Positions 48,201-51,200 of a stretch of DNA of 64,000 bases are shown here, in pieces. The notes beneath the pieces are model-generated. The model ran no database searches, had not been told where the DNA came from, and worked only from the letters and a program-made list of their open reading frames with translations. Within the stretch, counting starts at the first letter, position 1; each line of letters starts with the position of its first letter. Source of the DNA: Magallana gigas (Eukaryota); the NCBI RefSeq assembly GCF_963853765.1, contig NC_088855.1:51770001-51834000 (forward strand), in the 5' to 3' direction. A program made the translations under genes and the position numbers.

Positions 48201-51200
48201 CATGGTACCATGTACCAAGACCAATATGTTTAAAATCAGATCCTTTGATCCGCTCACGAAGATCTCTACACTAGCGAAGATCTCTACACTAGTGTAGCGA
48301 TCTTCGTGAGCGGATCAAAGGATCTGATTTTAATCAGATTGTACCAAGACATTATCTTGTGACATATTGAACACATAGACAATATATTATATGATTTTTT
48401 TATTGAAATCAGTTTCTGATTCTGTTGAATTATAACAAGTCATTGGTCTAATTTGTAGGTGGGATATGACCCCGCCCACTGTTAATGCCTATTATACACC
48501 AACAAAAAATGAGATCGTCTTCCCTGCTGGGATCTTACAGGCCCCTTTCTACGATATTGATTTTCCAAGGTAGGGATTTGTTACATGTATGAATTTTCAC
48601 AAGTCCAAAAGTAGAGATTATAGATTGTAATAATGTATGTTTAACCGCTATTAAAACAATGATGGATTGTAATAGTTTGATCAATTTTTTAATGTAATAA
48701 CGATCGTGGGGAAAATGTTTCAAGCATTTTGTATACTATCTTATTATAGGTCATTGAATTTTGGAGCCATGGGAGTTGTGATGGGACATGAACTTACTCA
48801 TGGATTTGATGACCAAGGTGTTTTATCTTAAAATCTTGTATACATGTAGCATAAGATTTATTGAATGATAATAGAGATCTGGAATCTTGTATAACTATGT
48901 AGATGTGTATCATATATCTCTTTACTGGCTATGAGGAGGATAGCAAGTTTTGTTCAGTTGTTTTCAATGGTGCAATTAACTTGCTATTGTCCATATATTG
49001 AATTTAAAATGTAGTGACTTGGATGGTAATAAACAAGTTAGAGTTATTGTACTTTGAATTTAAAACGTAGTGACTCGGGATTTCACCAGAGGTGTTTTGA
49101 GATTAAAAGCAAGGGAAATCAAATGCTGCCTGGGCTTAGTTTTGCTGACTATTCACTACAGGGTTGTCTCTAAGACCCGGGAGGCAGGGAATTCCCCCGC
49201 CTATAATGCCTTAATTACCCGGCTATTATTGCATTTCAAACACAATGTAGCTATAAGCAAGACCCCCCAGACCCCCTGCTACTTTTTCATTTCCTCCTTC
49301 TACTTCAATTTTTAGAGACAACCCTGCACTATATGCAAAAAAGTTAGGGAACTATTTCACAGTAATTAAAAAAGCATGTACATTTGTATATTCATCCTAG
49401 TTTTACATAGAAAATGTCCAAAGAGAATTAATAAAACCTGATATTCATTAAACAATAACAAAGCTTTCCTACTTGTTTGTTTGTCAGGTAGAGAATTTGA
49501 CAAGTATGGGAATCTCCATCCCTGGTGGAACAACCAGTCTATCATCAACTTCCAGAACAGGACGAAGTGTATCATAGACCAGTACTCACAGTACAAAGTA
49601 GGGGACAACCATGTAAGTCATTTATCAATTTATCAGTACCTACAATGTAGTCAGTGTATCATAGACCAGTACTCACAGTACAAAGTAGGGGACAACCATG
49701 TACCGTAAGTCATTTATCAGTACCTGTAATGTGGTCAGTGTATCTTAGACCAGTACTCAGTGTACAAAGTAGGGGACAACCATGTACCGTAAGTCATTTA
49801 TCAGTACCTGTAATGTGGTCAGTGTATCATAGACCAGTACTCACAGTACAAAGTAGGGGACAACCATGTAAGTCATTTATCAGTACTTGTAATGTGATCA
49901 GTGTATCATAGACCAGTACTCACAGTACAAAGTAGGGGACAACCATGTAAGTCATTTATCAGTACCTGTAATGTGGTCAGTGTATCATAGACCAGTACTC
50001 AGTGTACAAAGTAGGGGACAACCATGTACCGTAAGTCATTTATCAGTACCTGTAATGTGGTCAGTGTATCATAGACCAGTACTCACAGTACAAAGTAGGG
50101 GACAACCATGTAAGTCATTTATCAGTACTTGTAATGTGATCAGTGTATCATAGACCAGTACTCACAGTACAAAGTAGGGGACAACCATGTACCGTAAGTC
50201 ATTTATCAGTACCTACAATGTAGTCAGTGTATCATAGACCAGTACTCACAGTACAAAGTAGGGGACAACCATGTAAGTCATTTATCAGTACCTGTAATGT
50301 GGTCAGTGTATCATAGACCAGTACTCAGTGTACAAAGTAGGGGACAACCATGTAAGTCATTTATCAGTACTTGTAATGTGATCAGTGTATCATAGACCAG
50401 TACTCACAGTACAAAGTAGGGGACAACCATGTAAGTCATTTATCAGTACTTGTAATGTGATCAGTGTATCATAGACCAGTACTCACAGTACAAAGTAGGG
50501 GACAACCATGTACCGTAAGTCATTTATCAGTACCTGTAATGTGGTCAGTGTATCATAGACCAGTACTTACAGTACAAAGTAGGGGACAACCTTGTAAGTC
50601 ATTTATCAGTACATATACTAGTAATGTAATCAGTGAATCTTAGACCAGTACTCACAGTACAAAGTGGGCCAATTTCAATCAACCTTGGCACAAAGCAGTC
50701 TTAGGCAAAGGGGATTCAAAGTTGTGAAAATTAAGGACCACAGCGTTTTTCAAGAGAAGATACAACACCCCTGGGAATGTGTTCGGAATGTTTTCTTTAT
50801 CGTTGTTAAGCAGGGTTTGAAATAAACAGTCCCCCACTCGCCATTTGCGACTAAGTTTTCGTGTGGGTGATTTGAAAATGCCAGGGGCCCACATGGCAAT
50901 TAAACAATTCCTGATGCCAACACATCTTCTTTCCAAATTTGTCCGAATGTTTCTTATTTTAATTTAGGTTGATCACTCAGACGCTTATCTTTACCTATCT
51001 TCACTGTGAAGTCTAAACGTCTTGATGATCAAGACTACTGAAGGTCTTCATCAGTCAAGCGTTTCATAGTGTACCAAGAAACATTACTTTCAAAGCCTCT
51101 AACTGATTTCGTCATTGTTATAATATTTCGATTTATGGCAATGGTTGTATCAGCCAGCCAAAAGAAAAGGATTTTTATTTTTAATAGGAGATAGATTAAC

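Follow-up and report, generated by a model that had tools for sequence, protein, structure and literature searches.

We analyzed a 64,000-nucleotide (nt) window of the genome of the oyster Magallana gigas (RefSeq assembly GCF_963853765.1, contig NC_088855.1, positions 51,770,001 to 51,834,000 of the forward strand; coordinates below are window positions). The window contains a gene for an endothelin-converting enzyme homolog, a zinc peptidase of the M13 family. In this gene a tandem repeat, here called array 1, begins inside exon 15, includes the 5′ splice site (donor) of that exon, and continues into intron 15. Its copies look like short in-frame exons, and an interpretation made earlier from the DNA letters alone (the sequence-only reading) suggested that they could generate variable peptidase isoforms. 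The transcript and protein evidence gathered here does not support that suggestion, and array 1 is most likely silent.

Host gene

The Pfam domains PF05649 (Peptidase_M13_N) and PF01431 (Peptidase_M13) match the gene exon by exon from 42423 to 49609, and it encodes both zinc ligand motifs of the M13 family, HELTH (HExxH) and ENIAD (ExxxD). Seven exon translations were tested against P0176 and are 99-100% identical to it (100% in six of the seven). P0176, P0277 and P0278 are M. gigas endothelin-converting enzyme homologs (UniRef A0A8W8MSH3; XP_065936337.1, XP_065936338.1). The 648-amino acid (aa) homolog P0015 is colinear with the locus across ~19 exons and its tblastn alignment runs on from exon 15 into exon 16 with no gap. 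Colinearity was established by comparing single exons with database proteins, and the junctions are those of the database proteins.

The sequence-only reading had placed exon 15 at 49488-49612 and the start of the next exon at 52960, and had located the array between the HELTH and ENIAD motifs at a conserved Cys; all of this is correct. HELTH lies in the exon that ends at 48817. Exon 15 can be aligned with human ECE-1 (3dwb_A, residues 518-555, E=5e-10) and with neprilysin, and the Cys is conserved. In M13 structures this Cys is disulfide-bonded.

The features around the repeat are:

48745-48817 (start approximate), plus strand: exon 14, with the HELTH motif, ending ...GFDDQG (tblastn to P0015; exon 14 to exon 15 joint in reads)
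49488-49612, plus strand: exon 15, ending in phase 0, its last 45-47 nt forming unit 0 of array 1 (PF01431 positions 52-92, P0015, ECE-1 alignment)
49566-50665, plus strand: array 1, a donor-seeded minisatellite (Tandem Repeats Finder, unit table, identity matrix, alignment, genome search)
49620-49635, plus strand: 8-nt micro-duplication (ATTTATCA twice) in the unit 0 spacer, which keeps a 29-aa read-through open in this allele (Tandem Repeats Finder at low threshold)
49655-50633, plus strand: twelve complete pseudo-modules (AG, 45 nt, GT) with their spacers (in-register cut, alignment)
50634-50665, plus strand: truncated, degenerate 13th module, which starts with TGA and abuts a dispersed repeat (unit cut, alignment)
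50666-52790 (right end approximate), no strand assigned: high-copy dispersed repeat block that makes up most of the remaining intron 15 (>2700 candidates in the genome; word depth)

Structure of array 1

Tandem Repeats Finder reports array 1 at 49566-50665 with a period of 79, 12.7 copies and 91% matches, together with higher-order periods of 163 and 242. The repeat unit consists of the last 45 nt of exon 15, the GTAAGT donor and ~34 nt of intron, and it is present in ~13 copies of 79 or 84 nt. The array starts 47 nt before the exon 15 end at 49612, so that the exon-intron boundary falls inside the first monomer. The real exon 15 end (TGT..CAT, 49568-49612) forms unit 0 and is followed by the donor GTAAGT and a 42-nt spacer. 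Units 1-12 are 79, 84 or 85 nt long, and each contains a stop-free module of 15 codons in phase 0/0; the spacers between modules measure 34, 39, 40 or 42 nt. The in-register cut and Tandem Repeats Finder thereby bear out the earlier description of an exon end amplified in tandem with its splice donor, and the unit table and alignment agree with its count of twelve in-frame AG-45nt-GT phase-0 modules.

The units differ in their donors. GTAAGT follows the module in units 3, 4, 6, 8, 9, 10 and 12, and GTACCGTAAGT in units 1, 2, 5, 7 and 11. Written out with the preceding codon, CAT/GTAAGT is exact in six units, unit 12 has CTT/GTAAGT, and five units have CAT/GTACC/GTAAGT. In these five, the 5-nt insertion leaves two donor sites, a weak one in frame and a strong one out of frame. 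Among the encoded residues, Q>V (giving SVY) is found in units 2, 5 and 9, I>L also in unit 2, and S>L and H>L in unit 12. The sequence-only reading was right about SVY in units 2 and 5 and about H>L in unit 12, and it overlooked SVY in unit 9 and S>L in unit 12.

Overall the units are 91-100% alike. Units 3, 6 and 10 are identical, as are 4 and 8, and 1 and 11, and divergence is greatest in the edge units 0, 12 and 13. The exon 15 end (the unit 0 module) is 100% identical to eight other modules. Three variant features (Q or V, the 5-nt insertion, and three spacer types) occur in mosaic combinations across the units, which points to exchange between units and is the signature of unequal exchange within a minisatellite. 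A genome search finds the unit at this single locus and nowhere else in the 564-Mb genome. With several units 100% identical at one locus, the repeat is not due to chance. The lack of copies elsewhere also rules out array 1 as a dispersed or transposon-borne satellite.

Splicing of the copies

The 90% identity cluster of the host protein has 81 members. Fifteen are listed, and the results below refer to these; 13 of them are complete through the C-terminus, namely two RefSeq isoforms, one UniRef entry, and 10 Logan transcript-assembly open reading frames seen on 73 contigs. In all 13 complete models KVGDNH is followed directly by exon 16 residues, which is the plain exon 15 to exon 16 junction, and the distance from HELTH to the end is exactly 164 residues. 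Complete models range from 805 to 818 aa, with the length variation confined to the N-terminal side of HELTH. One 620-aa member of the cluster lacks its N-terminal part and has the junction and the 164-residue C-terminal part unchanged. No module insertion is present in any of the 13, and the canonical junction is the only one in the assembled and annotated products, with the truncated model P0279 (described below) as the one exception. The orthologs of Crassostrea virginica, Saccostrea echinata and Ostrea edulis share the M. gigas junction and have no insertion. The two sites joined are:

49613-49618, plus strand: authentic 5′ splice site GTAAGT, with no other donor seen in use (GDNH/VKGK junction in 13 of 13 complete cluster members)
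52960-53025, plus strand: exon 16, the partner of the authentic donor, downstream of the 3.3-kb intron 15 (P0015 and database protein junctions)

The sequence-only reading had named the exclusive observation of a 49612 to 52960 junction as an outcome that would count against its proposal, and this is the sole junction in the complete models.

Read depth gives a similar picture. In raw polyA reads the depth is 3-10 in exon bins and 0-0.9 in the five bins of array 1, equal to that in other intronic bins. One set of RNA contigs has zero depth over 49650-50449; the other includes array 1 contigs at a level explained by unspliced RNA (~7-11) multiplied by copy number. The joint between exons 14 and 15 (48817/49488) is found in two RNA contig sets and in eight raw polyA reads. 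The joints of exons 15 to 16, 16 to 17 and 17 to 18 are not among the 15 of 217 read joints listed, which are mostly transposon-derived; this is uninformative and does not indicate absence. An RNA contig near 50592 with a depth of ~425-458 was considered as possible expression of unit 12 and rejected, since it reaches the edge of the dispersed repeat. Its mean depth is inflated because dispersed-repeat words have depths in the thousands.

An 88-aa open frame reads from exon 15 into the array. It matches only paralogs and distant homologs at ≤66% identity, and no read-through product was matched. The modules are thus not supported as a source of variable peptidase isoforms: the complete models have the plain junction, and the array lies at intron depth.

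Sequence features bearing on silence

The sequence-only reading had itself cautioned that weak polypyrimidine tracts and spacers of 34-42 nt might silence the modules, and this caveat fits the data best. The 20 nt upstream of the pseudo-acceptors are 45-50% pyrimidine, versus 60-80% at four real acceptors of the host gene. An intron of 34-42 nt, the spacer length here, would be very short. By both measures the modules appear to have neither a competent acceptor nor a workable intron between them, and these two features probably account for their silence.

The substitutions in the modules amount to ~6 events, and all are nonsynonymous or create a stop (I>L, Q>V, S>L, H>L, C>stop; 0 synonymous). 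Among the inner units 3 of 45 module columns are variable versus 5 of 34 spacer columns, a difference that is not significant and has low power. The pattern gives no sign of coding constraint, with the same low power.

Splicing from a later donor would not restore the reading frame: at unit 1 the strong GTAAGT lies 5 nt out of frame, and in later units TAA or TGA codons come into frame. The sequence-only reading had also noted a read-through from exon 15 to the first duplicated donor that would add 29 aa. In this assembly it is open, within a frame at 49442-49705, and the read-through ends at a weak GTACCG donor. In another allele it is closed after 9 codons: protein P0279 reads VSHSSVPTM*, because that allele lacks the 8-nt ATTTATCA duplication of the unit 0 spacer. 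P0279 (MetaClust UPI0005C3A01B) is an old 712-aa model that runs through the exon 15 donor (window 49613-49650) and stops: ...GDNHVSHSSVPTM*. It is an annotation casualty, truncated by reading through the donor into the repeat.

Polymorphism and history of the locus

Word depth in a DNA run is 219-451 over array 1 and ~120 in the flanks. Two RNA runs of other studies contain variant array contigs, which differ by 5 nt at 49784 and by T>A at 50592, and the unit 0 into which P0279 (a model from another assembly) reads is slightly different. The sequence variants of array 1 in other samples are T>A at 50592, the 5-nt insertion or deletion, and an allele that lacks the 8-nt duplication.

Matches to the dispersed repeat (>2700 candidates in a first look at the genome) begin at 50665-50668, exactly where unit 13 breaks off. 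The remainder of unit 13 was sought beyond the transposon block and in the neighboring introns, with no match above chance. Together these observations suggest that the 3′ side of array 1 was truncated by an insertion or rearrangement. The dispersed-repeat blocks in introns 15 and 14 (50666-52790 and 49050-49450) have word depths up to thousands of times single copy, in the intron 15 block in all runs, and many internal-deletion joints fall within them in both DNA and RNA runs.

Some indication of age comes from comparison with other oysters. M. gigas exon 15 encodes RTKC...KVGDNH, versus R(T/A)QC...KLG(D/N)N(H/Y) in the others, and the Val codon of KVGDNH, specific to M. gigas, is present in every unit of array 1. 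Two explanations suggest themselves, an origin of the array within the gigas lineage or concerted evolution of the array and the exon end. The residue before the Cys is Lys (AAG, 49565-49567) in M. gigas exon 15 and Gln in the other oysters, and each array module is preceded by CAG, which at this place would encode Gln. Either the array may have kept the ancestral codon, or the agreement may be a coincidence.

Other arrays at donors

Two further minisatellites of the host gene start at annotated donors. The features concerned, with the last coding exon of the gene, are:

47066-47164, plus strand: exon ending ...ARDK, whose donor starts array 3 (ARDK/ANAV junction in RefSeq isoform X1)
47165-47289, plus strand: array 3, three diverged 39-43-nt units starting at the donor GT (GTTTGT, GTTATG, GTTGCA; tandem repeat search; donor after ...ARDK)
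53454-53530, plus strand: exon 18, whose last 11-13 nt are repeated in array 2 (AIYR/VIG junction)
53520-54513, plus strand: array 2, a 39-nt minisatellite of ~25 copies, degenerating toward its 3′ end (Tandem Repeats Finder)
54750-54849, plus strand: last coding exon (homolog alignment)

The array 2 unit is GTAATATC...GCTATAGTCACAG, that is, donor and intron start followed by a copy of the exon 18 end (its last 11-13 nt), and each unit contains two AG/GT junction-like sites. Three of the five minisatellites with a period of at least 15 in the host gene are at donors.

An array is also found in a paralog on the same chromosome as the host gene, at C3:12.63 Mb (L028:453-1822; G000:C3:12629452-12630821), with a 37-nt unit, 37 copies and 91% matches. 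It repeats the final 31 nt of the homolog of exon 15 (…CMTNQYSSYTVEEAGKK; …ADCMTNQYSSYTVEEAGKK) plus GTAAAG. The sequence of this array is unrelated to that of array 1, making it an independent event at the homologous junction. At its unit boundary the microhomology between GTACAG and GTAAAG points to slippage. Arrays of another paralog (C3:26.63 Mb) were considered as donor-started and rejected, as they are purely intronic.

The 12 M13 loci sampled in this genome contain 19 minisatellites, four of which lie at donors and none at acceptors. Random placement would give ~0.7-1.2 donor arrays against the 4 observed, a comparison made post hoc on a small sample, and the donor excess is suggestive. 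We regard it as a tentative and rather doubtful idea that oyster exon ends at 5′ splice sites are preferred birth sites of minisatellites and that exchange with an array could feed substitutions into coding sequence. Such exchange is conceivable because the exon 15 end is itself unit 0 and identical to eight modules.

Several other repeats and features were noted in passing. Three arrays of a 160-168-nt satellite-like unit share motifs (11231-12429, 18334-19574 and 23561-24010) and resemble a satellite that is associated with transposons and common among oysters; the introns of another M13 paralog (C3:46.9 Mb) hold a similar array with a unit of 165-166 nt. A further repeat, 16 copies of a 28-nt unit (81% matches), occupies 36141-36593 upstream of the host gene; a minus-strand GTAAGC lies just past its end, and the repeat does not look donor-seeded. 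The Ostrea edulis ortholog (L038, OX387704.1, 10325886-10345888; 806-aa gene) has a first coding exon that consists of ATG alone, followed by GT. The window has a run of N at 61007-61229.

Interpretation and alternatives

With a probability of roughly 80%, array 1 is a minisatellite of the "mirage" type, expanded at the DNA level, in which only the first donor is used and the downstream copies are spliced out and add no protein. The duplicated DNA segment would have started within exon 15, crossed the 5′ splice site and ended ~34 nt into intron 15; short direct repeats likely mediated the duplication, by slippage or unequal exchange. The copy may then have expanded to ~13 copies, homogenized by unequal crossing-over or conversion. 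Genuine exon 15 would be defined by its strong upstream acceptor and the first donor, and hence the spliceosome would use only that donor. The 12 downstream copies would leave with the 3.3-kb intron as ~1 kb of extra intron length, with no protein sequence added and presumably no effect on fitness.

Several points weigh against this interpretation. The exon 15 to exon 16 junction is supported by assembled and annotated models rather than by individual reads, and raw-read depth is low (~8 junction reads for the neighboring intron). Assembled contigs and annotation drop rare variants, and inclusion at a few percent or restricted to a tissue is possible. Seven pseudo-donors are GTAAGT and match the authentic 9-mer CAT/GTAAGT (CTT in unit 12). 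The human genes IFI6-16 and CBS use the first two pseudo-sites beside the authentic donor, and silence is not guaranteed for arrays of this class (PMC1557585). The selection test on the modules has little power, with 0 synonymous changes among ~6 and 3/45 against 5/34 variable columns.

If the modules were real alternative cassette exons, one or more 15-residue segments would be inserted between the zinc-binding motifs and variable isoforms would result. We consider this very improbable. Units 1-12 do have the form of exons, being bounded by AG and GT, 45 nt long, in phase 0/0 and free of stops, and seven of their donors are like the authentic one, but none of the 13 complete models (73 transcript contigs plus RefSeq and UniRef) has the insertion, nor do the orthologs, and polyA reads cover the array at intron level. 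The pseudo-acceptors also lack a pyrimidine tract, the spacers are short, each module substitution is nonsynonymous or a stop, and every module would add an extra copy of the Cys conserved in ECE-1 and neprilysin. The same transcript evidence applies equally to the proposal that an exon or intron is being born, with a module becoming a new exon and the intervening repeats a new intron, as in a model of intron gain put forward for globin genes of amphioxus (PMC3087553). In favor of this, the modules are in frame, but the proposal makes a claim about the future that one genome cannot decide, and we give it very little weight. The sequence-only reading had listed such birth in progress, as well as a bank of decoy donors, among its options; both are possible, and nothing here speaks in their support.

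The reiterated donors might instead act on the unspliced RNA, either by binding several copies of the U1 small nuclear ribonucleoprotein to define exon 15 or suppress premature cleavage, or as back-up donors. Pseudo-sites of this kind are functional in human F7, where mutation of the authentic site activates the next one (PMC1557585), and in the oyster such arrays lie at three donors of the host gene and at the homologous donor of a paralog. Back-up donors would fail, however, because of the 5-nt frame shift at the GTAAGT of unit 1, the later in-frame stops, and the read-through that is closed in another allele. Moreover, the four donor arrays are unrelated in sequence and range from 3 to 37 copies, which fits a mutational by-product better than a selected device, and we judge an RNA-level role to be unlikely. 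Least credible is an assembly artefact, a collapsed or over-expanded repeat, which the sequence-only reading had named as something that would undo its proposal. Tandem arrays are prone to mis-assembly, one amphioxus mirage was mis-assembled (PMC3087553), and short-read contigs cannot span 1.1 kb of 79-nt repeats. Against this, word depth in the DNA run is 2-4 times single copy in several array bins, variant array contigs come from the RNA runs of two other studies, and an older, independent gene model reads from the exon into the unit 0 spacer. The ordered mosaic of unit variants is also unlike a collapse. The copy number itself is approximate. The preferred explanation remains a silent minisatellite expanded in the DNA.

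For the enzyme itself array 1 has little consequence, as it lengthens an intron by ~1 kb and shows no sign of altering the protein. It is a caution for annotation, P0279 having been truncated exactly at this array, and it contributes one more case to a donor bias in oysters that may be genome-wide. If that bias reflects a mutational bias at exon-intron boundaries, it would bear on intron growth and on the long-standing proposal that new introns or exons originate by tandem duplication across AG/GT sites.

Comparison with known systems

The architecture of array 1 has already been described as a class, and array 1 is a further example of it: its first monomer spans the boundary, the donor is reiterated, and the most upstream site is used in 13 of 13 products. 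A literature search found no paper on boundary minisatellites in oysters. The human F7 intron-7 variable number tandem repeat has a 37-bp unit and a first monomer that spans the boundary, and only its most upstream donor is used, by 5′ to 3′ scanning (Borensztajn et al. 2006, PMC1557585). IFI6-16, CBS, LMNB2 and PDGF have further boundary-spanning minisatellites, and the first pseudo-sites are also used in IFI6-16 and CBS (PMC1557585). In amphioxus, "mirages" occur in Adh3 and in the globin genes BflGb6 and BflGb9, where normal splicing is undisturbed, and they have been proposed as a route to intron gain (Ebner et al. 2010, PMC3087553).

Array 1 resembles F7, LMNB2 and PDGF in that the authentic donor is followed by its own copies and only the most upstream site is used; units of the F7 type are 37-100 bp long and present in 5-25 copies, to which array 1 is comparable. 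It differs from F7 in carrying 45-47 nt of exon per monomer, versus 4 nt in F7, which is enough for in-frame AG..GT pseudo-exons that encode a conserved motif. It also has the 5-nt insertion in five units, and its splicing is deduced from transcript models, whereas that of F7 was established with minigenes. With thirteen near-identical donors in a row, and an upstream AG and open frame in each copy that F7 lacks, array 1 is a natural test case for the choice of 5′ splice sites.

Tandem arrays of alternative exons share with array 1 the repetition of in-frame AG..GT coding segments derived from a neighboring exon. In array 1, however, the copies comprise just the last third of the exon, the gaps are 34-42 nt without a pyrimidine tract, no transcript model contains a copy, and the copies gather only mutations that change an amino acid or create a stop.

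The likeness to amphioxus mirages includes tandem duplication of an exon-intron boundary, signs of concerted evolution in the inner units, diverged edges, many AG/GT signals and undisturbed splicing. Mirage units are 10-160 bp long with 81-100% identity, and array 1 is comparable. The host here is a mollusc rather than a cephalochordate, and amphioxus has such repeats at both 5′ and 3′ exon boundaries, in contrast to donors only among the 12 oyster M13 loci.

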